A DNA stretch of 64,000 bases from Takakia lepidozioides (taxonomy: Eukaryota; Plantae; Bryophyta). Both the position numbers and the translations under genes were made by a program. The stretch covers positions 56,482,001 through 56,546,000 of the forward strand of contig CM060734.1 in assembly GCA_030704615.1 (NCBI GenBank), written 5' to 3'. This document shows positions 24,301 to 47,359 of this stretch, piece by piece (positions within the stretch are counted from its first letter, which is position 1; each line of letters starts with the position of its first letter). The notes below the pieces were generated by a model that saw only the letters and a list, made by a program, of their open reading frames with translations, had not been told where the DNA came from and searched no databases.

Positions 24301-27300
24301 CACACACACATATGCCAAACAGGTAGAAAGATGAACAGAAGGGAAGGGGAGAAGGAAAGTTTATTTGAAGAAAATCACCGGCCAAATCAAGTACAATCTC
24401 GATGTTGTGGTCAACACACTGCACTGAGAACATGTCTATCAGCCCTTCAAGCTCCCGTCCTAGATCAAAGTCTGCCTCCTCCAGTAAAAGCATTCCTGAT
24501 TCCACCTGAATAAGGAACATGCAGCCATACACATCCTTCCTTACAAAGAGACCCCACATAGGAGTGATTTTTCTCCTCCTAAATCTCAGCATTTCCCTCA
24601 GGAGACTTCTATTGGCAGTTTGGACTACCTGTAATAAAGTTGGCTCCAGTACGGATTCCTGGTCTGGGTCCCAGGTTCATGACATATAAAACTTTACAGG
24701 CATGGCCACTGTCAACACATATGCTTTTGTTTCTTCCCCTTCTCCCCCAAAAACTGAGGACCTTGGATTGAGAAGTCTCCTCACTCCTTCTCCAGCTAAG
24801 CCAATTCTTCTCTCTTTCCCTCTTTCACACTCTCCTCTCTCTTGCTTGGGACTGGAAACCACCTTGCTCAGATCAAGAATATTGTTGAGGAGGGAAGAAG
24901 AAGAGTGGAGCAGCGACGAATTTGGGAAACCATGTTCACTTGCTCTGCAGTAAGATAATCATCACAAAGTAGTATGTCCAGCAGCCCGATGACAGCTGCC
25001 ATTGGTGTGCGAAGCTCATGGCTGCAGAGTGCCACAACCGACAAACTCCTAGATTAACTGGAGTAATGGAGGTAACTGGCTAGGGTGAAGGTCAAATATT
25101 GGTACTGTACAGTACTAACTACAAGCCCTCTGTTCTTAAATACTCGAAGATGAGCTCATATTTTAGCTGCACCTCACCTCTTTCTTCAGGTAACTGCATG
25201 CTTACGTAATGAGAAAAACAACACAAAGCTTTGGAGCAGCTATGATTTTTAGCAGAGGACACTATAAGTCCGTCAGCCATCAGCAATGCTTAATCGACCC
25301 GTAAGACCAGGTAGAAAGAAAATCACTGGAGGAAATCGTCAGACTTCGTAAAAAGCTCCCAACTTCCATGTCTGACAATTGCCGATTTCTTGTGTAGGAG
25401 ATGCTCGTGTACCTCATGTTAGCCAGAAACTGACTTTTATAGTTACTCGAGGCCTCTGCCCGCCTCCTTGCATCAAGATGGTTTATCAGCTCTGCCCGTA
25501 ACTTCATCTCAGTAGAGACTCCGCTGGTCAAGATGAGAATGAATATGCAGCCCACAAGCAGGATGCAGCTTGATATTGATATTAAAATGGCCAGTGTGGC
25601 ATGACCACTGTGGTCTACCTCTCCCATCACGAATGACCGCGGAGTTATGATTACACCCACCTGGCAAAAGAGACATGCATCAAACATCAGGTGAAGATTG
25701 TTTGGTCCTTCTCTGTCATCATCTTGCTTGCTAGGCCCTTCCAGAGACAAGTGACTCTGTGGCCAGATAAAAGATAGAATTCATCCTGCAAGACTTGGAT
25801 AGAGAATGCATGTCAATGAATTTGTTGCCATGACTCACGGGCTGTCTTGCCTGGAGGCATGACTCAACTGTAGTATTTCATGGGTAAGCAGGATTCAGGG
25901 GCCTGCCTGGAAACGATCATCAACTGGATTCATCATGGGAAAGACAGATTTGGCAAAAAGTACAGAGCCCTTATATCAGCTGGATTTACACTAACATATG
26001 CTTGGCACTACAATTCACCATTGAACCACTGTGAAAAATAGATCGTTTCAAAAAATTGAGAGAAATTCAGTGTCCAGGACTGTGACCAGGCTGATGAGTA
26101 ACCAAGATAGAATTTCAAAACAAAACTTAACAGGATCATGGGACTCACCAAAGGAAGTCTTGGGAGATTCAAAGAGAAAGTGTCGATGTAGTAGCGTGTG
26201 TTTCCTAAGTATATGTCTTCAACATGTATGGCATTTTGGAGGAGCCCTTCCTTGCCATATGTCTGCCACAGCCACTCTGCCCCGGCATGTATCACTGGAT
26301 CGCTTGATTCGTTGGCCAAAACCAATGATTTCTTTGATCCACTGTCATTTATCAGGGGTGCACTGGTGGAAGAAGCCAGCAAATAGCCATCTGCAGTGGT
26401 CAAGTAAATGTAGCCCTTGTGGGCATCTGTGAGCTCTCTCATCAGTAAGCTGATGCTAGAGAGCGCAGTGGTGATGCCTGTGACCGCAAAAATTGTATCA
26501 TTGGCAGGATGACGAATTGCCGAGGAACTTGATAAGAGTGGTGAATCCTCATTTGCATTAACTGTCACATGCCACGTGACTCCACCTTGCTTTAATTCTG
26601 ACACGCCTTGAATGTCCTTAGTTAAGTCATAAGCAGCTGTCATTTGAGGCGCACCTGTGGCTTGACCTGTTTCAGGATCGACTGGCTGGTAGTACCATGA
26701 CCAATTGGTATCCGCTCCAGGGGGAGAATCAGGCCAACTGCTCACAGGTGTCAAAGGAGGTGCAGGTGCCTGCGTGGGCAATTCAGTGGTTGGGGTGGAG
26801 TTGCTCAACATATTGCCCAGGCTTCCATTGGATTGCTGAGAATAAAAGTACTCAGTTTGATTACTTCCCACACTTCGGTCAAAAGCTTGGAGATGGCCAT
26901 TCTTGTATATAATAAAGACAGTCTTAAAGGTTTTCTGACTTACAAAAATTGCCCATGATATGTTTCTCATTGTTCCATACAGCTGCAATGACACAATCGA
27001 ACACTCAGAATTGTACCGTAAAGCACGCAGCTAGATGCGAATTCTTAGCTGCAAACAGACTTGCAACACTCCAAGATTGCGAGGTCCCCATGTAGCACTC
27101 CACAACCCCTCCAGTGACTGCCACCGTAGAAATTGCAAAATCAAAGACCCCAATAATGAAATGAAATGAAATGAACTGGTACTTTATAACGTCCGCGGAA
27201 AGCTCAAAGAGCTTATGGGACACAATAGAAAAACATGAGAGAGGAAACAAATCCAGAGCCAAAAAGAAGAAGAAGAAGAATAATAATAAGTGAAGCCCAG

Positions 27301-28774
27301 AAATACTATGCCAGAATCCCAAACAGGCCCAGATTGAATGACAGACCACCACATTATGCAACCACAGGACATCACAAGTAAATTGAAACTGCAGCAGTAA
27401 CGAGGGTGACGGACCAATGTGCCTGACAATCCTCCCACGGTATCCTTGTAAAAACAAAAACCACTGAGGATCCTTAACTGGTGGCCGTGGACATACAAGA
27501 TACAGCGCCAAGGCTAACCCTGTACACAAATCATCCTTCTTTAAGGGAAAGAAACAAAGACCATGGCAAGTTATACCCACCTCCGTTTCCTGACTCGCAT
27601 TCATCACCAATGCATACTGCCCAACCGCAAACTCAGAGAGATAGACTTGCGCTACAGTAGTGTCATGTGTTGCATTCAGCAGATTCCACATCCGTGAAAT
27701 GGGGCGCTGCAGCAGTTCTGTCCGCAAACTATATGCCAGGGTCTTGATTGACCTTGTAGTATACGCCACGGTAAAGTGCCAAGTCAAAATGGTCAACAAG
27801 CCTATCAAAATGGCCAGCATCACCTGCCCCCCATCCAATAAATATGACACATCAACCATTTGCAACTTGAACCAACCCCAACATGGAATAGCCTCAATTA
27901 AATCTTAAGAAGACTCTAATCTGTAATCGACTAAAAAAGAAGAAGATTGCACAGGAGTTCAGTGCAGCTCTCCACATGGGATAACTACAACTCCTCAATG
28001 CCCTCACTTGTTTGCAATCTATCTCACTGTTATTTGCTTCTTGAGCTGCAGAGCACTACTGGTAGAACATAACTGGAGGGCATCCAGGCCAGGATCATTG
28101 CGTGATGTGCAACTTTACAAAGGCATCAGGAGAACCGTGTCCCCGAACAACAGATCTGCAATGATCTGGGTACTTTTGCCACCCACTTTGGGTATCTTCA
28201 AGGCTCTGACAACTTATCCCATGCCGCACAGGCAGCCCCCTTCAGAATCTGACACTTGAAAGTCCCTATTGTGAGCACAGTCTTGTAGTCCAGACCATTT
28301 CGCCTATCGTGCCCAGAAACCAGCCAACTGTATCCGTTTGCTTCACAGGGAGGGACAAAGAGAAAAAATGCAGAGCACCTGAAGGATTCAAAGAAGGACG
28401 AATTCATTTTTATTTTTATTCAGGATCCCACTGGAGTTACCCAGAGGGAGAGGGAGGTAGGATATGGGCAGGAGATTGTACAACGAAACACACCGTTATA
28501 ACAGACGTGAAAACAGGAGCATACATACCATAATGCCAAGGCGGGCAGCAAAAATGCTGTAGTAGTAGGTACGGCGATGAGGTCGATGGAAATTGGAATC
28601 CTGGTCTTGTAAGTCGGCATCCACCACGTGCACAGCATTTCGCCTGCGAACGCAGCCCCAGCAGTTGAGCCTAGCCTTAACCCACTGCCTCCAACCCCCC
28701 TGCCCATGCTCACAGAAGCCGCCACAGGAGCAGCAGCCCCCATCCAGCATTACCTGCTCCGGCCTACCCCCCAT
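18356..28774 (-). CDS. AHK1: AHK1-like hybrid sensor histidine kinase (2 TM, extracellular domain, HisKA, HATPase, pseudo-receiver, receiver); about 1519 aa if a 1-nt frameshift in exon 5 is corrected
   Basis: Exons 28529-28774, 27581-27823, 26149-26982, 25413-25660, 24863-25021, 24379-24505, 23384-23473, 23015-23200, 22683-22752, 22344-22386, 21507-21656, 20545-21264, 18916-20142 and 18356-18571, all GT-AG. Motifs YYSIFAARLGIM/VMLAILIGLLTILTWHFT, EASSNYKSQFLANMSHELRTPM, NSIKFT, EVEDTGCGI, GGTGLGL, LLAED, LMDCQMPRMDG and YLTKP match Arabidopsis AHK1 as I recall it. Confidence 0.93.
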
Positions 28775-29591
28775 AGATCTACACTCCAACCACCCGCAGC
28801 TGAAATCTGCAAGATCTCCACGCCATTTGCCTCCCTCCACCTCCAACCTCAATTTTCTCAATTTTTCACCGCCTTTGCATACAGCAAACTCAATTCAACG
28901 CCTGCTCACAACACACTTGATCTCCCACCTTCTCCACTTGGTAAAGCTCCTGCCTTGTGCAGCGGTGGAGCCAGCAATCGGCTGCGATCTCCACCACCAT
29001 CCGCAGCAGCAGCGTGCAGCCCTGCCATGGACCCCTCCGTGGCACCCCCAAAGTCAAAACTTGCGCTACGTCACCCTCTTCAGTTGTCAACGGATCCCTT
29101 CTTAAAAAAATTAACGCTCTTATTATTATTACTACTCCTGCCCTGCCCGCTACCACACCTTTCGTTGACCTTTACCTTTATCTTTACCTTTACCTTAGTA
29201 AGTTTACCCTCATTGTACCTTTACACGTTTAGGTGTATTATATATAAGTAATGATAATTCAATTTTTAATATTATTGAGGAGGAAGACTCTCGTAACTGA
29301 TGGTGTCATTTCACAGGCATTTCACCATAGTGTAACCCCACGTGGAGTTACACTCCCCATGGTGTAACCCCGACTGGAGTTTAGGTACACTCCCTCCCAC
29401 CCATGGGACCCTCTGTCACCCCTACTTTTTTTTTTTCTTAAGAGGAACAGGGGATTACTCAGCTCCCTTAGTAACTGGAGTTACACTCCCTTCAGACCAT
29501 GTCACTGTCAATTTCTCAAAAGAGGTGGGGGAAGATTTGACATGCTAGAAACCAGAGTACCAAGAGGTTGCACATGTGCATTAAGTTATTA

Positions 29592-29790
29592 CCATAGTAC
29601 CTTGGCAAGTTCGACACAAATTTTAATATTTTAAAGACTATTGAAAATTTTGGAAATTAGTTTTATGAAATTAAATAATTTTGTGAATGATAATAAAGTA
29701 TCTTTGGGAATATTCTATATTTGGAAATGGAATTCTCAAAATAAAATAAATATTCGACAGAATAGTGTTGAACTTGCCAAGGTACTATGG
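29592..29790. mobile_element. Tc1/mariner (Stowaway-like) MITE upstream of the histidine kinase
   Basis: 26-bp TIRs CCATAGTACCTTGGCAAGTTCGACAC and GTGTTGAACTTGCCAAGGTACTATGG with one mismatch. TA on both sides and an AT-rich core. Confidence 0.9.
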
Positions 29791-29951
29791 TATTACCTCA
29801 TTTCTATTCCTAGTGTTAATGGTCCTATGTACCCCTACCTTGGTCAACACTGCTGCCCAAATGAAGGGCTCCAAAGTACTCATGTACCCACACATGAAAT
29901 AATCGGTAGGGTTGACTTGGGAACTTATGTGGTTTTGTGTTAACTATTAAC

Positions 29952-30571: not shown

Positions 30572-31039
30572 GTATTGATCCATAATCTCCCAAGTGGTTT
30601 TATGGTACCCTACTCCACTGAAATCCGTCCGACCAACTACTTATAACCACCATTCATCCACAATTTTCAACCATATATAGATAACTTTGACAACCAAGTT
30701 GTCCTAGCCGGGTGGTAACGGGCATATACCACCTCCGATCTGGTTGTGGGTTCCACAAACATGTCTACCTTCCGATTGGGAGGCAATATAGACCTTCGGG
30801 TTGAAGAGACACCATAATTTACACTTCCTTAAGAGGTGTCATACACCTTTAGTGCATCGGAGTGTGTTGCTTTTGTTTGGGTCGAATTAACCCTTCTCTT
30901 CCAATTGAGATCTACCACTACTCTGGCTCCAACTTTTGCTGGTTCTTGCAAGTCAATGGATAGCCCGCGGTAAGCTTGGACATCAATACAAAACTTCCCC
31001 AAGCGAAAAATAAAATAAAAATATGACGCCTCATGAAGG

Positions 31040-31794
31040 GAGCGTAACTTATGGTGTCACTTCACCACAAGGGCTACTGCCTTCCAGCTGGAAGGTGGAC
31101 ACCTTCATGACACACCAGACCGTGGTTTGAACCCACAACCACATCCAACGTGGTATGTGGCTACATGCTGGTTGTCTCCCCATGCAAAATCTCCGCTGCA
31201 GCATATGCCGATGACCTTGCCATCCTTGCCCATAAACCAAACACCTAAATCGACAAGTCACCAAACTATACTGCTTCAACCAATGGTCCGGTATGGAGCT
31301 TACTGCACTTGAGTAGGTAGCCCAGTGGTTGGGTGTTTGTGCCTTGCCTGTGCATAACCTAGGTGATCCTGGGTTCAATCCTTCAACATGTGCCATCAGA
31401 CCGTCCATTGGCCCTCGATGGCATGTGTGTTGAGCAGTAGGCTCTGTAAATTCACTGGACGTTAAAGAATCTTTATCTTTATCTTTATCTCCACAAATGT
31501 GTTGTTACCGCGGTAACACATCACAACCGACTCATCAAATCCGCTATCGCCTCCCACTACAAACTATGTATACATTATCAGAACAAACCTTTCCCCTTCT
31601 TGGGCCCAAATGAACAATACACCGACCTGGGCATCCAACTAGTCCTGTCCCTCACCTGGCACATTCAGAAAGGCACCACGCTATCCAAACTAGCCAATAA
31701 AAGCATGGCTCTCCTCAAATCCCCAGTTGCCGTTAGACCCAAATTATCAATCATACAATCAGTACTAAAACCCAAGTTCAATATTCATTCCTAG
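31040..31794 (+). pseudogene. Non-LTR retrotransposon reverse transcriptase fragment, split by a SINE
   Basis: ISAAAYADDLAIL at about 31190-31228. WSGMEL|NLHKCVVT is restored when 31303-31486 is removed. QYTDLGIQLVLSLTW follows downstream. Confidence 0.8.
31303..31486 (+). mobile_element. tRNA-derived SINE, family 2, with (ATCTTT)n tail
   Basis: A-box-like TAGCCCAGTGG, B-box GGTTCAATCC and a tandem ATCTTT tail. Removing it restores the RT reading frame. The head is duplicated at 5548. Confidence 0.8.
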
Positions 31795-32155: not shown

Positions 32156-32530
32156 TAGAGTTATCCGTAAATTGTCCCAAACTCGGCATGAGAACCCTGA
32201 GTTTGGCCAAAACTGGGCATGAGACTCAAAACTTAGGATCAAGCGGTACGACTAGAAAAAAACACGAGATCAAACTGCCAGGACTAGGAAAATGGGGGTG
32301 GCAGGAGTTTGGACCCGAGTTTTGTTTGTCGTTGAGGCGGAGGAGCTCACGAGCTCATGTGAGCAGCCATTGCCCTCATCCCCAGTTTATGATTAGGTGC
32401 CCTCTTTTTTACTTCATGCCCAGTTTTCTACACTTTACGGATGTACTCAAACCTCAGGATGAAACCCCCAACCCCGTAACTCGGGTCCAAACAGGGTACC
32501 AAACTCAGGCTCACTTTATGGATAACTCTA
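32156..32530. mobile_element. MITE with TAGAG termini (hAT-like)
   Basis: TIRs TAGAGTTATCCGTAAATTG and CACTTTATGGATAACTCTA, with subterminal AAACTC/GAGTTT motifs. No TSD evident. Confidence 0.6.
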
Positions 32531-32753: not shown

Positions 32754-33909
32754 TCCAGCAAAATCCCGTTTCAAGCCTAAGAGCTCAGGCTCCGAGGAAT
32801 TTTGTTTTAAATGGAATCTCTAGAAATCAAGATGTGATTGGGTTTTTTTGGGGCAAACCCCACTGTTATGTTTAATATTCATCATGACTTACCGACCGAG
32901 AAGTGGAAACCCGGAGTGGTCTTCCCATAGCCTGGGACAAAAAGAGGCTGCAGCTTCTCAAGGGCTTTGACCTCTCCTGGGGCAAGGGCAGAATTCTCTA
33001 GCCTCCAAACTCGAGTAGACTTTTTTTTCTTAAAAAATATGTTAAAAGTTTTCTCTCTTAGTAACAGGTGGTTATCTATCTGGTTATATATGTATATAAG
33101 CACTCTAGGTGAAAAAATAAGTAACCGGTCCAGTTAGGAACGCCTCTCATTTTAAGATAATAGGGTCTTCAATGGGCACGTGCGATGTGGCCGGTGGGCC
33201 CCGCGCACGGACGCCCGGCTCCCCAGCCCCCGCCCGCCCGCCCGCTGCTGCGCGCGGTCGCCCAGCCGCGCGGCCAGTTCCCCGCCCATGAGTCCGCTGC
33301 CCTCCAGTCTGCCAGCTGCTGGCCAGTCGGCTGCCCAACAGTCTGCCAGTCCGCCAGTCCGTTGTTGGCCAGTCCGCTGCCCAGCAGTCTGCCAGTCCGC
33401 CAGTCCGCCAGTCTGCCCGCCAGTCCGCTGGCCAGTCCCCTGCCATCAAGTCCGACGACGGCGCAGGATCGCCACCATCCATTCCCATAACCCATCCGAG
33501 CCCTCCATCTTTAGGGCTGCGAAAATGGCAATGATCTTCCCACCAAATCCCGGCCGCTCTCTATTGACGGCTGTTTGTTGTCCGATGTTGCGGTAGGCGT
33601 TTCCATGCACGCAACTGTTCCTCTTTTGCGCGCGATGTTCATGATGATGATAAAGCGTGTGCTTGAACATGAGAGGACTGTCTGGGCACTACATCCACCA
33701 TCGTGCATATGCTTCCACTATTTTTGTCTTCTTGTTGTGCTTTCGGGAACCTTCGTTTTATGGTTTGGTTCTATGTCATAAAATATGGAAAATGCGGACA
33801 TCTGTCGTCGATAACGTCCTCTACTTGTGATCCGTCATGATACGTTTAGCCCCTTCGTACTGCATCCCCTATGAGAGCCTTCACAAGTTTAGTTCGTTAA
33901 AGGAACCCA

Positions 33910-34155
33910 TGGGTAACATGGGCGCAAAAATGGTGGAAGCGTATGCACATGGGGGCGTGTATTGCAGATTTCGTATCGGACGATGGGACTGTTTATGTGA
34001 CCAAGTATAGCGGCTTGCATCCGTCGTGCATAAGTTGTGGAAAGGGTGGAGAATCTGAAGAAACCCAGCTTTGTGATGGATCCACATGGTATTATATAAG
34101 GGATGGCAGCACAAAAAAACAATTCGAGTCGTCACGGAACACCATCCAGTCGTAA
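33910..34155 (+). pseudogene. PHD-finger-like fragment inside the MULE
   Basis: SCISCGKGGESEETQLCDG matches the N-terminal half of a PHD finger. The second half (C..H..C) is missing. Confidence 0.4.
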
Positions 34156-35220
34156 GGTCCTCAAACATCCACACGCACCTGCTGAATGCAGATGTCTGAG
34201 CCACGACGAGAGATGTCTAAGACAATTGCATCTGCAAATGCGCGTGGATGTTTGAGGTCCGTTGTGTCGCGAGTTTGTTCACAGTGGGTCCGCTGGCCCG
34301 TTAGTGCTCCGGATATTCCCCTTATCGCGTGTATAACAGTCAGTTTGGAGGCGGTCTGCTGGAAGTCCATCTGTTGGGATATCAGTCTGTTGCACTTGTG
34401 AATTTGTCAGTCTGTTGTATCGGAAGTCTGTTGCACTAAGTCTGTTTGACTTCTTATTTTCCCTCCGGTCAGTCTTTTGGCTTGTTCTCCCGCCAGTCTG
34501 GCAAAACGTCCGTCTGTTGGACAGTTCTCCTCTATGGATATCAGTCTGTTGGACAGTGCATGCATCAGTCTGTTGTGCCGCGAGTCTGTTCGCAATGGGT
34601 GTGTTCGATTTTCCTGTTCTCCCCTTACTCTCTTTTGTCTTCATTCCACTGGCAGGGAAGTGCCTCCAATATGAAGCCGCTTCGCCTCAGCAAAGCGAAT
34701 AGTCCGCTGGACTGGCGGTCCGGTGGACTCTCGGCCCGATGGGAAATGAGTCTGCTGCACTTGCGAGGAGCGTGGATGAATTTAGTACGATCCGTTCGTT
34801 CGGTGGACGTATTCAATGCGATGACGGCGGATAGTTGGCGCCTGTGAAATCGCGCCACGTTGGCAGTGCCATGCCCGCTTTCCCCCTTCTACTTCTACTT
34901 TCTCCATTTTCTTCGCGCATGTTTCTTCGCACAGTTTTGCACTGCTTTGTTTTTCTCTTTGCGTTTCCATCACCGTAACGAAAGACGACCGTTCTTCCCC
35001 AGGTGTGGAGAGTCGCGGTGAGCCGCGAAGCGTCGCAAACACGCTCGCCTTCGTAACAACTCGAAGTTCATCAGCTTGGTGAGGTTCTCACTTGCTGCGG
35101 TGTTTCCATTCCATTCTGTGTCCTCTTCTTGCTTAGGGTGAGTCTTTCAATAGGACTTCTATCTGTCGCTCTGTCGCTCTGTCGCTCATTGTCCTTGCAC
35201 CTTCGTTTCATTCTGCAGCG

Positions 35221-38200
35221 ATGGAGGATGCTTGTGAAAAAGGTGGAGCGGACTGGTTGGATTTTGTGCACCAAACCAGACTGAAGAAGGAGCGAAGGTA
35301 CTGGTACTCACGAGACGAGTTTGATCATAAAATAGTGGAAGCATTTGTAGACCTCCGCGCCCGGAAGCCCAAAAACTCGAATTGGCAGAAGGACAAGCTC
35401 TTCTGTCCCTTCTGTGAAGAGGTAATCAAAGACAAAATCCAACTAAATCGGCATTGTGTTACAAGGAGACTGTTGCAATGATTCCACGGGATTTCAAGCC
35501 TTGGCCGATACTGAAAGAAATGTCGATTGTCAAAGAGGCCACAATGCGCTTGCGCGGATCAGTGCTTGACCCCCGCACTTTGGAATTAGACGAAGTGCGC
35601 GCACGGTATGGCGTCCATTGTGGTGGCCCGTCAATGGAGGATTTGCAAGTGCAGGGAACGCTGGACGCTCCTAGAAAACGTAAACTGAGTGATGGGGCCA
35701 AAAAAAAGGAGAGGCAAAAAAAGGAGAAGGCTGCAAGGTCTGCTCGCGAGGCAAGGGCAAAATCCACGCAACAGACTGAACCCCGTCCTGGGCGGCAGAC
35801 CCACACCATCAGTACTGATACTGAAAGTGAATCTGCTCAGGGCCTGGAAGGGGTGACAAGTCCAGTGGACATTGATTGACTTGCCTGACCAGACTCGGCA
35901 GCAGACTCACACAAATATCACGACCCATGCCATCGGTTTAGGGTCAAAACCAAAAACTCAACAGAGCACTGAAGGGCCAGTCTGCCCTGGCACATTGCGC
36001 CTCGTTGACTTTGGGCTTTTCCCACCAGAGTGCCCACCAATTGGGGATCCAGACTTCTTCCATTATTTATACAGAGTTGCCCAGTCAGGTCTGCTACGCA
36101 CATTAATCCGACAGGCGGAACAGAACTGGTTGAACAGCTTTGAAGATGAAGATGACGATGATGAAGTAGAGGAGGTAATGGTCAGTCTGACCGCCCAGTC
36201 TGTTCTCTATGCTGTTTGAGTCCATCATCGGGGTCACGTTGTCTATTCAGTCTGGTCAGTCCTCTGCGTTCTCTCCTCAGTCCGCTCGTCAGTTAGTCTG
36301 TTTTATATCGCTGCATTACTTACTTAGTCCGTTTGTCAGTCCGCTGGTCCAGTCCACTGGTATAGTCTACTAGTTGCCTCCACCCTACGTACGCATGTTA
36401 CAGTCTGCTGGTCTGTGAGTCCAGTCCGCTGCATGAGGTGAATATAGAGTCCACTTCCATTTTCCTGACGTCGAAGTTCTCTGCTGTGTACCAAGATGAA
36501 CGTGTTTCTATTCGTAGGGCCATTCAGGCTTGGCGGATACCTAGCAATGATGCTCCTTTACAAGCGACTGCAGTGCGTGCGGAAGTGGACCGCGTGCGAG
36601 AGTACATATTATTGAAGTATCCTGGGTCATCTGCTGCTATAGCGGCATTATATATTGAAGACGCGTCGGGGGGGGATGCGTCTGGGACAGCCGAGTTTGC
36701 CATCCAGCAGACTCCCATTCAGGAGGCCGTCATCCAGCAGACTCCCGTTCAGCAGCCTGTCATCCAGCAGACTCCAAGAGAGCAGACTCCCAACGAGCAG
36801 CCTGTCATCCTGCAGACTCATCTCCAGGAGCCCATCATGCAGCCCATGCCAATGGGAAGTCCTGTCATCCAACAGACTGCGGACCAGCAGACTGCCTTTC
36901 TCTCACATAGCACGGCTTTTTTGCAGTTTGGCGATCGCCATCACCGGTAATTCGCCCCGGAGCTGAAGACCTCACACTTCCCCGGCTTAGGGTGGGAGAG
37001 ATTAATCCCCATTTGGATTGGCATAATGAGCTCCACCGGATCGTTGCGGACCGCCGGTGGTCATTTGTACCCTTTCATTATTCCATGGAGTTTTCTATTG
37101 AGGAAGCCAACCATGTTCTAGAAGCCGCCTCTGTTGTTGCCATTGAAGCCACAAGCGACCAAAATGCGCAGCCTCTACTTGTGTAGCTGATTCTCATGAC
37201 CCACCTGCCTGAAGACCTCAGACATATGCCTATGGCACATCCAATTTTTGGGGTGCGAAGAAAGCACTTGTTCGGATTGACTGAGGAGGACTTTGAGCGC
37301 ATGGCAGCTTCCTTCCTACAACACAGATGGATGCAATTTGGCAATTTCCGCTCATACAACAAGTTGATGAAGGATCTGCATAGTTTGAGGATAGACTTAC
37401 TCCATGGAATAGACCATTCACAGAAGTTTGTGGTGGATGAGGCATTGCACTGGTTTGCATTGGTGATGGAGCGAGCAGTATTCGACATTGTTTTGCAGAA
37501 TCCCAATGTCTTCAAAGTCTTGTGGTGTGGGATCCCAACTGAAGACCGCATCGGCGCCATTGCTCATCTCGATGGAGCATACCTGTGCCGGCAAATCAAG
37601 GACATTGGCCTCGTCGGAAATCTCTTGGAAGGTAAAATGTTATGGGCAACTTTCGTGTTTCAGCTCAATTTCTTTTGCCAATTTTTTTACAAGTTCACAT
37701 TTGCATAAACATGTGTTGCAGGGCGAGTTGATCTGGGAGACAAGCAAGTGCAGGCTGCTTTCGACTCTTTTGCCAGAGGTGCAAGGGACCTTGTCTTGGC
37801 TTTACAAGGAGTTCGGGAGACTGTCCAGCAGACTGGCCACAAGAATGTCGAACAACATATTCCCCACGACACATGTGGGCAGACTGCCCCTCAGCCGACT
37901 GTGCAACAGACCATCGAACATGGCCACCAGACTGCCGCTCAGCAAACTGTACAGCAGACCGTGCAGCAGATCAACAAATCCAGCCAGCAGATTGTCCCTC
38001 AGCAGACCGACGAATCCAGCCAGCAGATTGCCCCTCAGCAGACTGTGCAGCACACTGGCGAACCTACTCAGCAGATGGCCGAGCAGACTATCCAGGAGAC
38101 TAACAACCAGTCTGTTCCCTAGATTGTGCAATAGACTCGGATGCACTGGCCTCACCGGGACCCTGTGGACGAATTTCTGCTGAGTTCCCAACAACATGTT

Positions 38201-40306
38201 TTTGGATCTGCCAGTATGAGTGTTTTGACCGAGTCCACTTTTTCCCCAGACACATTCACTGACGACGTCATCAGGTCACCGGTAAAGCATTCTTATCCAG
38301 CTCCCCGTGGCCTGCCTTCTATGACATTCCAGGTTAGTCCGGTTTTCGTGCGCTCAGTGGCGAAAGCCATAGATGAGTCCTACGTGATGACCGAACTCAA
38401 TCTGGGAACGCAAAACCGTATCATAGATCTTACAGAAGAGTCTGAGGAAGCAATTGTCGGTGGATCTTCCATGGAGATCCGAACACCCAGCCGGCTGTCC
38501 ACCAGACTGACTAGCACACTGAACAGTGGACACATGGAAGGACTGTCGAGCAACGTGTGGCGGGGCAGCATACTGTCTTCATTGATGAGCAGACTCAACC
38601 GCAGACTAACCAGCAGACTGCACAGGTCACAGATGGAAGGACTGACCAGGATGGCTCGGAGCGGCAGACTGCACAGCTCAGCTCTGACTGCACAGTTCAG
38701 ATTGCACGGCCTGACCAGCACACTACACACTTCACAGAGGGAAGGATTGACGACCAACCTGCCACCGAGCACATTGGCCACATTGAGGAAGAGACTGAAC
38801 CGCAGAGTTGCTAGCAGACTAAGTAGGGCGACAGCGCTACGTTTGTCTGCTCTATCCAGCCCGCCTACAGCTGTCCCTGCTTCCCAGGGGAGAGGCAAAG
38901 CCAAGAAGTGGACTGTCGTGGACCATGCTGAGGAGGTCGAGGAGGGTCCGAGTACCAAGAGACTGGCGAAGAAAAAGTCTGGCGTCTTTATGAACAAGAA
39001 CCGCAAGCTGGCCTTGGACATGGACAAAGATGTGGGTCGTTTCCTGGAGCAGCACAGGTGAGTACTGTGCTCAGTCTCCTCGTCTGTCTTTGTCGTTAAG
39101 TGCTTTGCGCTCTATTGTGGTCAGTCTGCATGCTGGTCAGTCTGCTGCTGGTTTCATCATTGTCTGTTGTGGTTAGTCTTGTCAATCTGATGAATTGTTC
39201 AGCCTGTAGAGTGTTTGGTACCATGTTGACGTCAGTCTGTTCAGTACATGAGGCTTCCCGAAAGATGGTCTGCTCTGTGCAGGATGGGTGCTCGGTTTGG
39301 CAAAGCACATGCTCTGCACGTGAAGGCAGGTAATTCCATGCTGATGTTTTTTGAAGAGGACCCACGGTTTGAATGCGGATTGTCGCCGGATGACATAAAG
39401 GCGGTCCAGAAGGTTGAGTCGGAGTGCACAGATAGACTCCTGGAGCTGTGGTGTCGATTCTATGAGAAGTCGGTTGAGGCTGCGTTCACTATTGCTGTTC
39501 TTCCAACGTCGACGTGGACGGTGTTGAAGTCATTGGGGGGGGGGCAACATGAAAGCCTTCTGGAGGTCTTGAAAGGTTGCCTCAGCACTGAATGACTGGA
39601 CAAGGACTTGAAAGAGTGCGATTTCATTTTGGTGCCAATTGGGGACGAGTTAGAACTCTTCTGAGTCTGCTGAGACTGTCTCCTGAGTCATAGTCTGGTT
39701 TCGCATTGTTGTCTTGACTCTGAGCGATTAAGTTGACCTCTGTATTTGTGCAGTGGACTGGGTTTGAAGATTGAGTCTGCTAAGTGTTGAGTCTGCTGAG
39801 CGGTCGGTCTGCTGAGTGTCAGTCTGCTGAGTCTGCCCATCATGATTGTGCAATGACGCCATGTTGTTTGATACCATTGCAGGGTGCACTGGAGTGTTTG
39901 TATCATCGACCTCCGCAAGGGCTGTTACACTCACCTGAACTCTATCAGGGACTTGCATAAATGTCCCTTTGTTCTAGGGTGGATTCGGAAGCTTCATGCG
40001 CAGTGCTTAGGGTACTCGATAGACTCACCAGAGTGGCATGAGATTGTCCAAGCATTTCAGTTCCACGCGTCTGATGTGCCCCAGAACCCATTCAGCTGGG
40101 AGTGTGGCTTTTACGTCATGTCATTCATTCAAGTGTTTTATGAGTGGGTAAAAGTCAGAGCAAATGTCTCCAAGACTGCAAAGCCAGAGAGAGGAACACC
40201 TTTCACGAAGGACTGGTTTACTTTCAAGTTTGCACTTGGGCAGCGAATGCAGTGTGCCCAGTATATCGTGCGGGGGTTGGACAACGTAGAGAAACTGCTC
40301 TCATGA
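35221..40306 (+). pseudogene. Multi-exon MULE cargo gene(s): N-terminal CxxC...H zinc-finger-like motif, basic NLS, Q/T-rich repeats, C-terminal Ulp1/peptidase C48 domain
   Basis: CPFCEEVIKDKIQLNRHC and PRKRK. Donors near 36174 and 39058; acceptors near 39282 and 39882. Protease motifs E*LDKDLKECDFILVPI, HWSVCIIDL..YTHLNS and PQNPFSWECGFYV. Frameshifts at about 35460 and 35875 and a TGA at 39593-39595. Confidence 0.75.
39884..40306 (+). CDS. Ulp1/SENP-like (peptidase C48) catalytic exon
   Basis: HWSVCIIDLRKGCYTHLNS aligns with Ulp1 HWALGIIDLKKKTIGYVDS, and PQNPFSWECG aligns with PQQPNGYDCG (both recalled from memory). Preceded by the acceptor TTGCAG. Confidence 0.8.
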   Translation: MHWSVCIIDLRKGCYTHLNSIRDLHKCPFVLGWIRKLHAQCLGYSIDSPEWHEIVQAFQFHASDVPQNPFSWECGFYVMSFIQVFYEWVKVRANVSKTAKPERGTPFTKDWFTFKFALGQRMQCAQYIVRGLDNVEKLLS

Positions 40307-40849
40307 GTATGATGTACTTGTCATGTGAAGTCTATGTACCAAAATAAAAAATGCGAATCTTTTTGCGTACTATTCCAGTGGTGATGAGCATTTTGTGTAC
40401 TGTGGGTGCTGGCATGTTTTGTAATGTTGTCACTAAACTCAATGGACACAATGGTGTCAATTTCCATGCACTATGCACCCGAGCCTGCTGAGCTTGAATG
40501 TGCGAGCAGTACGCTGCCGAGGCTAGGACTGCTGGGTCTGGTACCTAGTCTGGGAGGCACCATGTCCATGAGTCCGCTGGGATGCTGGATTGGCATAAGT
40601 TGTAGGGATGAGGTGGAAGTGTGGTGAGCAGACTTTTGGAGTGGGCAGCAGACTGACCAGTAGACTGGCTTACTGGCGCTCGCAGTCTGTTAACTGTGAC
40701 TCTGTTGGGAGACTGTGCGTGAGTCCGTTGGGAGACTATGCTTGGGAGACTGTGTGGGAGTCAGTTGGAGACTGGAGGAGTCCGTTGGGAGACTGTGCAT
40801 TAGTCCATTGCGGACTTGTATTTCAGAAAGGGACAATGCTACCAGAAGA

Positions 40850-41104
40850 AATTGTAGACTTATATTGTATTCTTCGTGACACCTACATGACATGTCACCT
40901 TGTCTCTTTTCGAGGAATTGCAGACTTATATTGTCTTCTTCGTGACACCTACACGACATGAAACCTTGTCTCTTTTCAAGGAATTGCAGACTTATATTGT
41001 CTTCTCCGTGATACCTACACGACGTGAAACCTTGTCTGTTTTCGAGGCATTGCAAACTTATATTGTCTTCTTCGTAACATCTACACGACCTGAAACCTTG
41101 CAAA
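40850..41104. repeat. 66-bp tandem repeat, about 3.8 copies, inside the MULE
   Basis: The unit GACTTATATTGTCTTCTTCGTGACACCTACACGACATGAAACCTTGTCTCTTTTCGAGGAATTGCA starts at 40857, 40923, 40989 and 41055. Confidence 0.9.
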
Positions 41105-42058
41105 TTTTCGAGAGTATATATGTGCTGCAGGTGCAGGTGCAGACACCCTCTTGCTGGTTCTCCGCAAAACCCTAGGCCGGGTTTTCCAAGCCTCCACGAA
41201 ATCTCGTCTCCTTTTCAGAGACATGTTGTTGTTGTCGTTCAGAGGACGGAAAGCCTTCGCTGCCGCAGGGTGCAACATTCCAGCCGCACTTTTCGCCAGG
41301 ATATCAACGAGCTGCCCTCTGCACATATGAAGAGCAGATCGGGCATGTGCCTCCAGGTATTTGTCATCACCTACAATGCGAAGTATGTCCCGCGAATTCT
41401 TGTTTTAATGAGGCTGAGACCTGCAGAGGTGCCTCGTCGTAGGGGAAATCGTCCGGAGGATGTCTTTCCATGAACTGATTGGATTCGTCGATGCCGCCGG
41501 CACCATTGCCCAAGAGCAAGTTAGGTAATCCTCCATGAATGGTTCCTAGCGCCGTGCTGGGGGCAGCGGACTCATGGGCGGGGGACTGGCGCCGCGGCGG
41601 ACGGGGGCGCGGGCGCGGGTGCTGCAGCCGCGCCCGCGGCTGGGCGACCGCGCGCAGCGGCGCGGCGGGCGGGGCGTCCGTGCGCGGGGCCCACCGGCCA
41701 TCGCACGTGCCCATTGAAGACCCTGTTATCTTAAAATGAGAGGCGTTAGGAACTGGTAGATGTCAGATTTTTGAATAACCTGGCAAATAACCTTATTATA
41801 AATACGGTTAGTATACGGTTCCTATACGATTATTATATCTACGGTTATTTGATGAAAATCGTCGGTTGTTTGAGGTTTTGCTAGTGGGCGGAACCGGAGG
41901 TTATATCCAGCCATAAAATGTTGAACAACTGCAACCACAGATTATTAGTTTCCTACAATTGATGCAATCAAAACCGCCGGTTATGAAAAAATTCAAATAG
42001 TCGCCCAACACTGGTTTCAACCTTATTATAAATTAAACAGATCAACACTGGTTTAAAC

Positions 42059-42375
42059 CAGTGTTGGTCTGGTATGGGTATCAGACCGGAGTATCAATGC
42101 TGGTGTCAACCCTGGTATCAGGGACCAAACCAGCCTGGTCTTAAGTATACCAGGTCATATATCAAACCAAGCTGGTATCCATTTCCTCATACCAGCCACA
42201 ATACAGTAACCCCCCCCACCCCCACCACCCCTCATCTTCCTCATTTACTCCGGTATGTGTACTATGTTAATTTATGTATGTATGTATGGATATATATATA
42301 AATAAAGGGACGGAGGCCCTGTTACTCAAAAATAAAGAAGCGAGGAAAAAATAACCTCGACAGGGCCGTAAGGCG

Positions 42376-42407
<32 letters not shown>

Positions 42408-42837
42408 GTGTGTGTCCCAGAACAGCCACAATGGGCAGCTAGAAACACAGCTAGTTCACCAATAAAACAGTGTAGCAAGAACCAGAGTCTTAATCGTCCA
42501 AGGTCTAAACATGCAGAGGCTAAGAAGACCACCTACACCTAATAGACCAAGCGCTGATAAACCAGCCAAGCACTTTGTCTTCCTACGCAAGGGCTCAAAA
42601 TTTATATTTACTTTATTGTATTTGTTTTCACTTGATATTTGATAAACTTGTGGCTTTGGAATGATACCAGAATTGATATCTCATACCAGCTGGTATTGTG
42701 GTCATGATACTCATACTTATACCAATATCTGTTAAAAATTACATCCACCATTATATAGACCAGACTGGTATAAAAGTTTTGTGATGGGTCTGCGGTACCA
42801 GGACCGGTGTCCTAAACCTGATACCAGACCAACACTG
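42059..42837. mobile_element. hAT-like MITE with a nested retroposon 3' fragment (about 42304-42590, including a ~30-nt G run)
   Basis: Perfect 17-bp TIR CAGTGTTGGTCTGGTAT / ATACCAGACCAACACTG. Left flank GTTTAAAC, which recurs at 42844-42851. Many TACCAG/CTGGTA subterminal motifs. Confidence 0.75.
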
Positions 42838-45482
42838 GTATACGTTTAAACACTGGTTTTACTGGTTGTTTAAACACTTATTATAGTATAATTAAACAGA
42901 TTAAAATTTAATCTCCCAAGCAACCTCGGATGAGGATGACATCGGAACGAAAATTGTAGACAATCCCTCTCATCCAGCCTCTTTAAAAAATGAATATAGA
43001 AAATCTGATGTCACGAATTTCCGCCCAGATCTCTCACGTGTGGGAATCCACAGTTGACTGGACAGGTGGCAGGGAACGCCGCCTTACTGGCCTTAGCCCA
43101 CCTGACTTCCTCTTGTGGATCCACACAAGCTTGCTATAATTAGTTATGGGCCCTCACTCAGGTGTTTATTTCCTTAATTTTTTAATTCTGCTTCTCTAAA
43201 TAATCTTTAAATGGTAAAGTTTCCAAGCACAGTCGCACTTCTGTTAAAAAAGAGAGAAAAAGAGCACCTATTGTGCGGTCACACTCAGTCAATCTAAGTT
43301 ATTCGGGTCACTGCATCGTAAATAGCAATAAATAAATGCATGGAATTCATGCAAGCCCTGCCGTATGTGATTATGAATAGGTAGTAAAAATCTGGAAGAT
43401 CACATAATTAGTCTAAATATCAAGGTAACAGGATTTGAGCCCTGAATCACCCAGGTGGTAGGCACTGTAATATCCAATCTTTCATTTATGGCATGCACAA
43501 GAAGTTGAACGGATGTCATTCATTAAAAGACAGAATATTCTCTTGACAATTGTCTCGATCGAATTGGAAGTCTAATCGAAAGTATCAGTGCTAAAGCAGC
43601 TGAAACCATTGCGTAGTCCTGCCTTACGAAGGCATGGCCAATAAAATAGAGTATAATTATAACTATATAAATATCTTCAAAATTTAATCTGTTGTATCTT
43701 ATTAGAAAAGAAAAACAAAAAGGAGAGGATGTGAATAAAAATAAATAAAAAAAATTTAAAAAAACAAAAGGAGTGACCGTCAACTTGAAAGTTTAATCTG
43801 AAGGTTTTTACGTAAAAGTAGGTGAGCGATGATGGTGGGATATTTAGCCAAGGAGTTTATTTTTGGACGATCCCGGGCAAATTGGAAAAGGAGAAGTGTA
43901 AAGACAAAGCAGTGCGAAGAATAATAGTAACTGATACGGAGAATAGTGTGAAGATTCCCGCGCACACACGGCAGCTCGCTGCTGGCCCGCCTCGTCTGAC
44001 TTGATGATGCTCTCATCTTTCGCTGCTGCCATGGCGGCCCTGCTTACACATCATCCCCTGCTCGCTGCAGCCTGTCACCCAGCTCGCATGACCTGTTCGG
44101 AATTTACAGTTCAACCAAGTAGAAAGATTTGACATCGTTGGGTAATCCATGATGCTGCCAAGGTGTGTTAGCTTGCTCGAGCTGCACAGACTGCTGAATC
44201 AGCAGCGATTAGCGGAGTTGAAGCGGGTTCGCAAGATTGATGGTGGAATTGAGGTTTGGTTCGGAGAGTTACAGATGGACTGCCAGGTACGACGATGGCC
44301 GGGAGATCAGCTAGTGCTCCTGTGCTTATCTATGTGAGGAAATAGTAGCATAACAGATGGCCAGGCAGGCAGCACCACAGCAAACCATAGGGTTGTGCTT
44401 GTCCCCTAATCTCCTCCCCATTTCACCCCTCCTTCTCGTTGGTATCCCAGTGAGGTTCCTCAATTTACTAGGTTTTGATCAGAATGTATGTTTTAGGTGC
44501 GCTTTGAGAGAAGTCCTGTTCCAACTGGGTAAAAGAAATGGATGCAATGGGGTGAATTGGCAGGCACTGAGGTCAAAAGTCTGAAGGATGTCTGGACATC
44601 AGGGACTGTGCTCGGCTTTGTCCCTGCTGTAAACTTGAACAACATTGGTGGCCTGTGCAGAGCAGGACAAAGACAAGTATGTAGTGTTGAACTGATTTCT
44701 TGGATTAAGGGGATGGAAGGAGCACACAGTCATGCAGCTGCTGCTGACCTGCTCCAGAATGTGATCTATTCACTGTCCATGGATTCAACAATCAAGCTCA
44801 TCTGAGCTGGGACAATCTCATACAAAATCCCAATACTAAATTTTATTGAATTCCGGTGCATCAATTAGATTTGCAGTCGTAGAGAGGCCATTTCCATAGA
44901 GTAGGTTGGAAGGAATGGCAAGACAATTCACATGTCCTTCAAATCCCGGAAAATGACTCTTAGCAGCCAGTCTGTTCCATGCGTCAAAATGTATACAGCT
45001 TCTTAACATCTGCTCATTAACTACTCAGGGCTTCGCACTTCCTGGGTTATCCGCACTTGCCAACCCTGCTTGTCTGCTTATCTACACTCCTGTTCCTCAA
45101 AGAGTGACCAGTGGCATGCCTCTAAACTAAGGACACCATCTCTCCAGAAAGAGACATTCTGAAATAGAAGAGAGAGAGCCCTGACAGAAAATCCACGTTA
45201 ATGTCAACTACACAAGTTGCCAGAACATGAAAAGAATTCTACAGCTTGATATGCCAGCTACGCAATGACTATCTGATACAACAGCCATAAAACCTTCACT
45301 ATGTTCACAAAACTTTCTCTCAAAGGAAGAAGCATCTCGCTTGCCGACAGTTACTCAATTGTGTGGGAGCATCTGACTTGAACTTCAATTGTACCCTGCC
45401 CAACAGCATTATGTAGAATATCTAACACATGATTTGGTTGACATATCCAGGAGATATGAAACTAAAATGGAAAGACATACCA

Positions 45483-45836
45483 TCAGAGATTGATGAACAC
45501 TGTGCCCATCTTCTTGCCTTGCCCATCAACAATGATGCCGTTGACAGAATCACTATCATTATCGACCAAGGCAAGCATCTGTCCATCAAAGAGAGTGATT
45601 GTAACAACAAGACCATCACTCTTGTTAGCCAGTGTGAAAGTTCCGTCCTTCCCATTGCTGGTTGTATATTCTATCCATTCATTGGGCATGAGCTCTTCTG
45701 GGGTGCCATTTGGATCCGAGGTCACTCCTATCCGGGTGTTTTTGGTCCAGTTTTCCACAGTCACTGTGGCATTTGCCTTCCATAGTGAGGAGACTACGAG
45801 CAGCATGAACACAAGAGTCCCTGCCATTCCTGCCAT
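45483..45836 (-). CDS. Small secreted beta-rich orphan protein, 117 aa
   Basis: Signal-peptide-like MAGMAGTLVFMLLVVSSLWKANA followed by a Cys-free mature region with alternating hydrophobic residues. Intact single-exon ORF with an acceptor-like CTGTCAG in the 5' UTR and a TATA-like element near 46000. Confidence 0.6.
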   Translation of the reverse strand: MAGMAGTLVFMLLVVSSLWKANATVTVENWTKNTRIGVTSDPNGTPEELMPNEWIEYTTSNGKDGTFTLANKSDGLVVTITLFDGQMLALVDNDSDSVNGIIVDGQGKKMGTVFINL

Positions 45837-47359
45837 TTCCTTGTGAACTATGCTCAAATCTGACAGACCAAAATGCACATAAACAGAGTGAAAGAAAGAG
45901 GCCTGAGGGCTAGAGAGGAGGATGATTGTTATTGGTGGCTCCAGGGACCTGAGTCAGGACCAGTGTGCTATCAACTCCAGTGGATAGCACTCTTCCTTTT
46001 ATTGTATGCAGATCTGACCTAACCCTAGGCAGATTCAAACCTACACACCACCACAAGGACCATAACTTCTGGAGCAAGAAATCCAACATTAGATCTGTAC
46101 CTAATGTAAACGATCAGGTGAAGCTCTACAATATGCTGACCATGCTCCTCTTGCTACACTCCAAGTTTTCTTGAGAAATACCACTGGCAGAAAGATAAAG
46201 CCAAAGTTTGGCTCACATGTGGAAAACACATCTTCTTATCCATAATCTGTGTGAAAAACCACAGCAACCTATTAAACAATTGTCATAACCCATTGATATC
46301 ACCCACCATGTACTGAAATCTCTGTAACTTGCTGAAACCGTATCTATAGGGACTTCGAAACAGAACGACCGTTTAGTATATAAGGACCTGTAGGCTATCT
46401 ACCTCCACCTACCTGTTCCCCGGATGCTCGACAATTCGATCAATATAACGCTGCCTCTTTCACCTACTCTTTGCTAAGAATCGGTCTCTATACGGATGTT
46501 AGCCACACGTCTTATGATTACATTCTAAACGGATGCAAACTCTTGGTGGACATTTGGATCCGCATTGAAACATAAACACGAACCTAACAAGAACCTAACA
46601 AGATGTACTACCAATCCCAAAATCAAGGGACTTACCAAAGGATTTCTTGGTTGATTCAGAGAGAGGGGTGTCTTGGACACGTCTCTTCACCATCACTGCT
46701 TGAGGGGTTGTACGAAGAAGTGAGCCACGCTCACTTCTTCCTGGCCCCACATCTTCCCAAGTGTCTAACTCACTTGCAACTCCATCGTTCCGTACCATTT
46801 GCATCTTGAGCTGAACACAACTGGGAAAGGAACACTGCTGGAGGGCTTCCAGGCTTTGGAAGTCACGAGACGGTAATTGCAAGACCTGAAGGGAAATTCT
46901 GAAGACGACAGACTTGCACTGGCGAAATGATCGAGCATTTCGGCATACCCAACGGCTGGTGAAAATGATCCAAGCGATCATGAGTAGAGATTTTGAGACA
47001 TAGTACGCTCTCACAGGCACAGGTCAGAATCTTCTGTGGGTCTGAGCTAAAGCCAGCCCTCAACACACCACCGTCCTCTCGCCTCAACTAGTCCCTTCCC
47101 TTTTCTTTCTTTCAGCGATCACGCAGTCTCTCTAGCAGACGCAGTGTACTTCTGCATATACTCGGTCAAACAGGTGTTTGTCTCCCGTGAGTAAAGCTTC
47201 ACTTGTCACCTTCCATTTTTCACTCTAAATTATTCCCCAGCCGGCCTGGGTGGGTCCCAAAGGACCCTTATTGTTTTCTTTTGTTGTTTTGCAAAGCCCT
47301 TTACAGGGGTCGCGGGAGCAGGAGGTGGTGTTCAAGCACCCCTCCTGCCCCTTGTAGGC

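Follow-up and report, generated by a model that had tools for sequence, protein, structure and literature searches.

Ends of the element and the family to which it belongs

The question that this locus raises is whether a Mutator-like element of the moss Takakia lepidozioides, which carries a SUMO-protease domain and has no recognisable transposase, encodes a factor that counters silencing. In the window, that is, the whole stretch of 64,000 nucleotides that was analysed, the boundaries of the element were confirmed at 33142-41744. It is flanked by a perfect 9-bp target-site duplication (TSD), GTTAGGAAC, whose left copy at 33133-33141 and right copy at 41745-41753 are identical on the plus strand. 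The left terminal inverted repeat (TIR) at 33142-33302 (plus strand) is GC-rich, imperfect and alignable over about 160 bp, and the right TIR at 41558-41744 (minus strand) is alignable over about 185 bp; over the first 72 bp the two tips differ by one mismatch and one 2-nt indel. The 19-bp tip occurs at only two places in the window, both of them ends of the element, where 0.03 would be expected by chance. An 8-bp TSD of the hAT type was considered and rejected because the flanks do not fit, and two metagenome contigs that matched the 19-mer were set aside as chance matches, the alignment being only 19-23 bp long. Comparison with other copies in sequencing runs covered 36300-42200. In one run (X1) 4296 contigs align over 5.9 kb of the element, which makes this a multi-copy family, and a contig of another run (X7) breaks away precisely at 41744 and continues in other flanking DNA, marking the end of another copy; contig letters running beyond the element were read by eye without a reference. 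The locus thus has what characterises Mutator elements (MULEs), namely a TSD of 9-11 bp, long TIRs and dispersed copies that share an end and differ in their flanks, and it represents a broken member of a Takakia family of the Mutator type that has many copies. The initial annotation was right about the ends, the TSD and the long TIRs, and about a host outside the seed plants. A single-copy element, which it had named as evidence against its own proposal, is not what was found; there are many copies, including an intact relative in which exons 1 and 2 are open.

As had been claimed, no MuDR transposase is recognisable in this copy. Domain searches of about 45 ORF pieces from both strands of the element returned no match to MULE, DDE, SWIM, FAR1 or GCM, and the DDE/SWIM transposase of an autonomous Mutator element was not found inside it. 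On the minus strand at 41084-41557 there is the truncated reading frame of a convergent gene, which is truncated at 41557, directly against the right TIR; the initial annotation had overlooked it. This remnant has an extra base at 41389 in this copy, and it matched no family in Pfam or in the metagenome and viral scans. Contigs at family depth diverge from the sequence of the element at 41557 and, therefore, this copy is probably a deletion derivative. The absence of a transposase is then probably a deletion in this copy rather than a property of the family, contrary to what had been proposed, and the convergent frame is possibly the 3' end of the transposase. Since the deletion may postdate the insertion, the missing transposase does not demonstrate mobilisation in trans.

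Structure of the accessory gene

The element had been described as carrying a cargo set of SUMO-protease, zinc-finger and PHD modules together with ORF segments of no known family. The C48 domain and the zinc finger are indeed there, but neither they nor the ORF segments are separate items. They are exons of a single gene of five exons, with GT-AG junctions and compatible phases, which encodes in order a C2HC zinc finger, orphan domains, Gln-Thr repeats, a SIM-like motif and the Ulp1/C48 domain. The gene, which lies on the plus strand, was searched exon by exon, and the intact sequence used for comparison was L001, one partial copy from Takakia run SRR15431198. Exon 1 (35221-36174) encodes the zinc finger (C-x2-C-x12-H-x4-C, with weak matches to zf-Di19, E 0.005, and to ZFP57 fingers), a basic NLS-like stretch, a small orphan domain and an acidic end; this copy is frameshifted at 35457 and at 35870 whereas L001 is open for 320 codons. 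Exon 2 (36528-37631) encodes a Gln-Thr repeat linker followed by an orphan domain some 230 aa long, and here this copy has a frameshift at 36916 and a stop at 37184 whereas L001 is open for 369 codons. Exon 3 (37722-39057) encodes Gln-Thr repeats, a SIM-like IIDLT with an acidic run near 38420, and a basic end. It has two stops in this copy, at 38121 and 38132, where run contigs have non-stop bases, and it lacks 28 nt and 471 nt relative to other copies. A 306-aa ORF at 38141-39061 was rejected as a chimera of two frames caused by the 28-nt loss. Inspection by eye and the splice phase assign exon 4 (39283-39648), which has a stop at 39593, to the first half of the C48 domain; searched alone it gave no database match. 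Exon 5 (39883-40306) encodes the catalytic half. No spliced joint was seen over 36300-42200 in a run presumed to be RNA, and matches to Extensin_1, Choline_bind_4 and DUF3903 were discarded as compositional and below cut-offs.

The Pfam match of the last exon to C48 (E 5.6e-12) bears out the Ulp1 domain, which is fused to the zinc finger. His (39887) and Cys (40103) are retained in this copy, and Asn stands in place of the catalytic Asp (39938) and of the oxyanion Gln (40085), so that an active deSUMOylase is not supported for this copy. The Asn at the catalytic Asp position could be a G-to-A decay change. The PHD module fared worse. What is present at 33997-34110 (plus strand) is a weak, degenerate and isolated half finger, C-x2-C-x11-C-D-G-S, which has three Cys but neither the fourth nor the remaining half of the Cys4-His-Cys3 finger with its eight ligands. 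It had no Pfam PHD match, its sole PDB matches were the PHD1 fingers of KDM5A and KDM5B over 20 residues (E 0.85 and 1.2), and it lies about 1.1 kb upstream of the ATG, outside the accessory gene. A PHD component of the proposed system is not supported.

The AGTCYG arrays

Throughout the element a short word, AGTCYG, is repeated in arrays, which the initial annotation had overlooked. There are 80 copies in the 8.6-kb element (9.3/kb) and 40 in the other 55 kb of the window (0.72/kb), the 64-kb window being the scope within which specificity to the family was judged; shuffles gave a mean of 19 and a maximum of 36. After tandem arrays were masked, 56 copies were left against 5.6 expected, a 10-fold enrichment. 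Repeats with periods of 8, 15, 16, 23, 46 and 66, in about 10 separate clusters, are all built around this word, and clusters of one orientation lie in the promoter, introns and subterminal DNA. It starts within both TIRs, and its density is highest, at 69.6/kb, just inside the left TIR, where the left subterminal array (33303-33460, plus strand; 8/23/46-bp periods) holds 11 copies in one orientation. Upstream of the gene, at 34331-34760 (plus strand), there are 10 more in one orientation. In the introns all 18 copies are on the sense strand, 9 in intron 1 (36175-36527, GT-AG), 3 in intron 3 (39058-39282) and 6 in intron 4 (39649-39882). The 3' spacer (40307-40845) has arrays in both orientations, and it is followed by the tandem array that had been reported earlier and is confirmed here (66 bp x 3.8, 40846-41110), whose unit includes AGTCYG. 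Exons hold 29 of the 80 copies, in reverse orientation and read as Gln-Thr, mostly in the Gln-Thr linkers, with none in the orphan domain or in the two C48 exons.

What the gene and the motif may do

The explanation that we favour, and to which we give an even chance, is that this copy, which is dead and has probably lost internal sequence, belongs to a family whose accessory gene acted as a self-targeted anti-silencing factor. In full-length members a convergent transposase gene, lost from this copy, would adjoin the right TIR. The N-terminal zinc-finger region would bind the AGTCYG clusters that the element carries in its promoter, its introns and its subterminal DNA; the SIM and the C48 domain would bind SUMO on silencing proteins at these sites and, if the protease is active, remove it; and members of the family would as a result be less methylated and transcribed. 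The motif would enter exons only as Gln-Thr linker repeats, and in introns it keeps its T-rich strand sense, probably because plant introns need U-richness.

Such a role gains support from the motif arrays and, by analogy, from a layout like that of VANDAL and KIU elements. VANC21 targets are non-coding, tandem, dense and in the same orientation (PMC5735166), and as AGTCYG arrays share these properties we count them in its favour. VANDAL21/VANC21 and VANDAL6/VANC6 resemble the Takakia element in having a dense same-orientation motif within tandem repeats in introns, intergenic and terminal DNA, and an accessory protein with tandem peptide repeats (PMC5735166). Their words are YAGTATTAY and AGTTGTCC/AGTTGTAC, and not AGTCYG. 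Also, the Takakia word fills coding repeats in reverse whereas VANC21 targets are non-coding, and the Takakia gene, for which binding and demethylation are putative, has no VANC domains by Pfam. Closer in gene structure are the KAONASHI/KIU VANDAL MULEs of Arabidopsis (Hoen 2006, as reviewed in PMC13317346), which like the Takakia element have a separate accessory gene ending in Ulp1/C48 and short family-specific motifs in non-coding DNA. KIU genes, which work through motifs of this kind, belong to the VANC genes and encode a Ulp1 domain as well, and thus the combination of Ulp1 with motif-targeted anti-silencing is not new (PMC13317346). KIU elements differ in being described as non-TIR, whereas the Takakia element has long TIRs with near-perfect tips, and in the VANC part, which is reported to be specific to dicots and derived from MAIN (PMC13547354), whereas the moss gene has a C2HC finger and orphan domains, and neither its exon pieces nor the intact P0001/P0002 matched DUF1985, DUF287 or PMD in Pfam. 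CUMULE and the other Ulp1-carrying MULEs of melon, rice, grape, hydra and lancelet are, like this element, of TIR type with a Ulp1 gene, and the parts of the sources available (PMC13317346, PMC2836005) report for them neither self-motif arrays nor an N-terminal zinc finger, both of which Takakia has; unlike them, the Takakia copy has no transposase.

Several observations count against the anti-silencing explanation. There is no homology to VANC by Pfam, 29 of the 80 motifs are exonic, unlike VANC21 targets, and Asn occupies two catalytic positions of the protease. In addition, one zinc finger by itself is seldom enough to specify 6 bp. To a wider proposal we give somewhat less than an even chance: Takakia Mutator families may have a sequence-specific anti-silencing independent of dicot VANC, with a zinc-finger/orphan reader, a SUMO-binding or SUMO-cleaving Ulp1 and a word of its own for each family. 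If so, bryophytes would have a convergent VANC strategy with SUMO removal as the effector step. A moss family that combines VANC-like DNA layout with a protein other than VANC would mean that motif-targeted anti-silencing had more than one origin. The role of Ulp1 on MULEs is still open (PMC13317346), and the Takakia family offers a direct test of it. Our literature search found no paper that pairs Takakia with Mutator.

A rather unlikely alternative is that the transposase reads AGTCYG as a subterminal-repeat and self-activation signal while the Ulp1 gene has a separate job such as deSUMOylating transposase or repair proteins. This would agree with the start of the motif in both TIRs and its peak just inside the left one, with the report that the AtMu1 transposase by itself activates cognate copies (10.64898/2026.08.24.746577, a 2026 preprint), and with the Ulp1 domains in Mutator elements of hydra, lancelet and angiosperms and in Ginger1 transposases, for which a transposition role has been proposed (PMC2836005). 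However, arrays also occupy three introns and the region upstream of the accessory gene, far from the ends, and at such sites a transposase has no need of end-binding sequences; the zinc finger, too, would be left without explanation. Less likely still, the motif could be a by-product of slippage and local duplication from a TIR seed, or a host-factor site, and the Ulp1 gene an ordinary and unconnected MULE accessory. That many copies lie in tandem repeats and low-complexity Gln-Thr coding repeats, and that orientation tracks strand base composition (introns are 34-41% T), is consistent with this, but one word forms the core of all six periods, its enrichment persists after masking, and slippage alone does not choose one word repeatedly.

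Decay of this copy and the orphan domains

This copy is dead. It is 1.8% divergent from the intact relative, with mutations of the methylation type and a pN/pS of 1.16, a ratio that reflects decay after the death of the copy. Being dead and incomplete, the copy is a poor representative; its value lies in leading to the AGTCYG family and to the intact L001. The same ratio, the absent transposase and the PHD-like piece, which may be a host-gene fragment, could be taken for a Pack-MULE carrying neutral host-gene fragments, and TIRs, a 9-bp TSD and no transposase are indeed common to Pack-MULEs and this copy. The content, however, is one coherent multi-exon gene common to many copies, with five phase-compatible GT-AG exons and 689 open codons in L001, and no host donor was found; neither the search of 1.84 billion representatives with the orphan domain nor the word-indexed searches showed a host-gene relative. 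For the main gene the Pack-MULE reading is largely refuted already and we consider it very improbable.

For the exon-2 orphan domain an exhaustive phmmer search of those representatives found only Takakia itself, word-indexed searches with P0001, the C48 exon and the zinc-finger region likewise returned only Takakia sequence, and metagenome and viral scans with the orphan domain gave no match. AlphaFold models built from single sequences were of poor quality (pLDDT 50 and 35) and fold searches on them uninformative; weak integrase and IS110 fold matches were rejected at a TM of about 0.17. We give hardly any credence to a HEPN-type ribonuclease that degrades silencing RNAs: an ESM Atlas feature search with part of exon 2 had a HEPN match at the top (best score 0.81), to which the ten best named clusters are related by family or clan, and an R-x4-H pattern follows a predicted helix, but shuffled proteins reach the range of 0.81 a third of the time, a longer exon-2 piece had no match, sequence searches of Pfam, PADLOC and PDB returned nothing, fold searches on the poor model (pLDDT 50) gave no HEPN match, and the residue after Arg is Met or Ile and not the usual Asn. 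Finally, between the PHD-like piece and the array upstream of the gene there is an imperfect hairpin at 34120-34290 (z = -3.9).

Ends and class of the element

The element spans positions 33142-41744 and is flanked by two identical 9-bp repeats, GTTAGGAAC; the empty site is a weak palindrome. Over 72 bp, the tips of the terminal inverted repeats (TIRs) are identical except for a single substitution and a 2-nt indel, and an alignment of the TIRs covers about 160 bp of the left one and about 185 bp of the right one. The 19-bp TIR tip is found at only two sites in the window, both at the ends of the element. In sequencing run X7, one contig matches the element as far as 41744 precisely and beyond that base continues in a different flank; this indicates a second insertion and confirms the right boundary. 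Thus, the bounds, the perfect target-site duplication (TSD) and the long TIRs reported in the initial annotation are borne out. The combination of long TIRs and a 9-bp TSD is characteristic of Mutator-type elements. The claim that a recognisable transposase is lacking also held, as no transposase-related Pfam match was found among about 45 ORF pieces on both strands. Judged by its ends, this is a non-autonomous Mutator-like element.

At the right end, a truncated minus-strand frame extends from 41557, where it abuts the right TIR, to about 41084; it is interrupted at 41389 by an additional base, which other copies lack. A contig from run X4 agrees with the window as far as 41557, beyond which it has at least 255 different bases; read by eye on the minus strand, this continuation starts with an acceptor-like TGCAG and its frame stays open. 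The family-level depth in X4 drops from 23.3 to 3.85 in the next bin past 41557, to which GC dropout could contribute. By eye, a loose end at 41389 in run X1 looks like a diverged paralogue, in which the first, second and third codon positions differ in 4, 0 and 7 of ten codons, respectively, as expected for coding DNA. The right TIR thus probably joins directly onto a truncated exon of a convergent gene. For the remnant at 41084-41557 no database match was found; it is possibly the 3' end of a transposase.

Structure and domains of the accessory gene

The initial annotation described a multi-part cargo set, but what is found instead is one predicted five-exon gene on the plus strand (exons 35221-36174, 36528-37631, 37722-39057, 39283-39648 and 39883-40306), joined by four predicted GT-AG introns that match in phase and contain 34-41% T. 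No spliced joint for it was seen in run X6, which is guessed to be RNA. Domain searches were run exon by exon. In L001, a relative's contig that is intact over exons 1-2, exon 1 encodes a C-x2-C-x12-H-x4-C finger, which matched zf-Di19 in Pfam at E 0.005, below the cut-off, and the fingers of ZFP57 at E 0.14, and exon 1 also has a basic stretch. Exon 2 encodes Gln-Thr repeats and an orphan domain; within the latter, at 37330-37370 (+), there is an R-x4-H pattern with a weak, unconfirmed HEPN hint from ESM Atlas. Exon 3 encodes further repeats and, by pattern match only, a SIM-like IIDLT with an acidic run. The Ulp1/C48 domain noted earlier at the end of a large spliced gene is indeed encoded by exon 5 (Pfam E 5.6e-12), and its nearest PDB matches are SENP2 and Ulp1. 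In the present copy the catalytic His and Cys are kept and Asn stands at both the Asp position and the oxyanion Gln position. The former differs from Asp by a single G-to-A change and may have arisen through decay of the present copy.

AGTCYG arrays and a possible anti-silencing function

Counted on both strands, AGTCYG occurs 80 times in the element (9.3/kb) compared to 0.72/kb elsewhere in the window, and order-2 Markov simulations gave a mean of 19 and a maximum of 36. AGTCTG was found 60 times against a median of 3 for its permuted words. Within introns 1, 3 and 4, upstream of the gene and inside the left TIR, the motifs cluster in one orientation; counted by orientation, they split 18:0 for introns and 5:24 for exons, counts that are not independent. 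The exonic motif reads as Gln-Thr in 7 of 7 cases in exon 2 of L001 and, with a 28-nt loss allowed for, in all 14 CRGACY words of exon 3, and there is none in the orphan domain or in either C48 exon. An 870-bp motif-free block upstream of the gene's own array holds the PHD-like piece (near 34027-34090), whose only PDB matches were KDM5A/B PHD1, aligned over the first 20 residues at E 0.85 and 1.2. In this piece Ser replaces the fourth Cys and the second half of the finger is missing; the piece may be a remnant, is no evidence for a chromatin-reader module, and the PHD module proposed earlier is not upheld.

VANC21 binds a short motif that is packed densely, and in one orientation, into the intronic, intergenic and terminal DNA of its family (PMC5735166); the KIU genes belong to the VANC genes and carry a Ulp1 domain as well (PMC13317346). 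Since the motif layout in the Takakia element is the same, the best reading, to which we give about an even chance, is that the accessory gene encodes a self-targeted anti-silencing factor, whose zinc-finger region would read AGTCYG and whose SIM and C48 part would bind or remove SUMO at these sites. The layout itself is observed; demethylation would be the outcome. The main rival, that the transposase reads AGTCYG and the Ulp1 gene serves transposition, is possible but clearly less probable. An origin of the motif from slippage or a host factor is more doubtful still; with tandem arrays masked, 56 AGTCYG are left versus 5.6 expected. A HEPN RNase is very improbable.

The element is not assigned to VANDAL/KIU: the TIRs are long, no DUF1985, DUF287 or PMD match was found, and VANC has been described as dicot-specific (PMC13547354). 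That the element works like them is a hypothesis. The Ulp1 fusion alone is not new because Ulp1 is widespread on Mutator elements (PMC2836005); what is new is motif arrays with a putative non-VANC reader in a moss.

Copies of the family and decay of the present copy

A search of 1.84 billion representatives with the exon-2 domain found a single relative, P0001, which is 95% identical and is encoded on L001 from run SRR15431198, a British Columbia metagenome of Takakia lepidozioides (PMC9021317); L001 matches 35003-37849 at 96.8%, which makes Takakia the host. On 36300-42200, X1 gave 4296 contigs (1552 at 99% or more, 1618 at 95-99%) and a summed depth of about 12,000-40,000, which is not a copy number, compared to 41.8 for the right-junction contig of the present copy. 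These contigs and depths show that the family has many copies. The X4 family contigs are long and unbranched at depth 22-28, so L001 appears to behave like the family consensus. Loose ends at 37816, 38513, 40185 and 40255 (X1, X4, X6) are diverged sister subfamilies of the accessory gene, C48 exon included.

Compared to L001, the present copy differs by substitution at 52 of 2834 aligned bases (1.8%); C-to-T or G-to-A changes number 28 and the reverse changes 4, with enrichment at CG (3.0%) and CHG (2.5%) over CHH (1.3%). Transversions away from C or G make up 19 of the 52 (12 A/T-type, 7 C/G swaps) over 35003-37849, and C/G swaps are likewise common in the run-contig comparison. In exons 1-2 the pN/pS is 1.16 and the present copy has three frameshifts and one stop, whereas in L001 the two exons have open frames of 320 and 369 codons. 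Thus the accessory gene of the present copy is dead, and the open relative suggests that the gene was functional while the family spread; a Pack-MULE is a very unlikely reading. In exon 3 the run contigs have 28 and 471 extra bases, and both stops of the present copy are non-stop bases in them. As 28 plus 471 is not a multiple of three, a further intron within the missing 471 bases is likely. The insertion is recent enough to have kept a perfect TSD, yet old enough for neutral decay.

Neighbouring features

A multi-exon gene (about 18787-27865, -), which has the element some 5 kb upstream, resembles by eye an AHK1-type hybrid histidine kinase, with HisKA-like and receiver-like exons; its scanned pieces had no Pfam match at E 0.01. 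A single-exon aspartic protease gene (TAXi_N/TAXi_C) lies at 13067-14728 (-), and a Myb-domain gene with long low-complexity exons at about 59689-63687 (-; Myb_DNA-binding, E 8.6e-08). A 131-aa ORF at 45483-45878 (-) starts like a signal peptide, has no Pfam match and may encode a small secreted orphan protein. The right flank (41760-42850) is repetitive, with short inverted repeats at 42005-42075 and 42821-42842 and a G30 run at 42377, has high depth in X1, and is probably a MITE-like element. To the left, three small inverted-repeat units (29584-29798, 30723-31159 and 32156-32530; arms 29-38 bp) are possibly MITEs or hairpins. At 3832-4464 there are 57-bp and 113-bp tandem repeats with the common core CCAAGTGCA.
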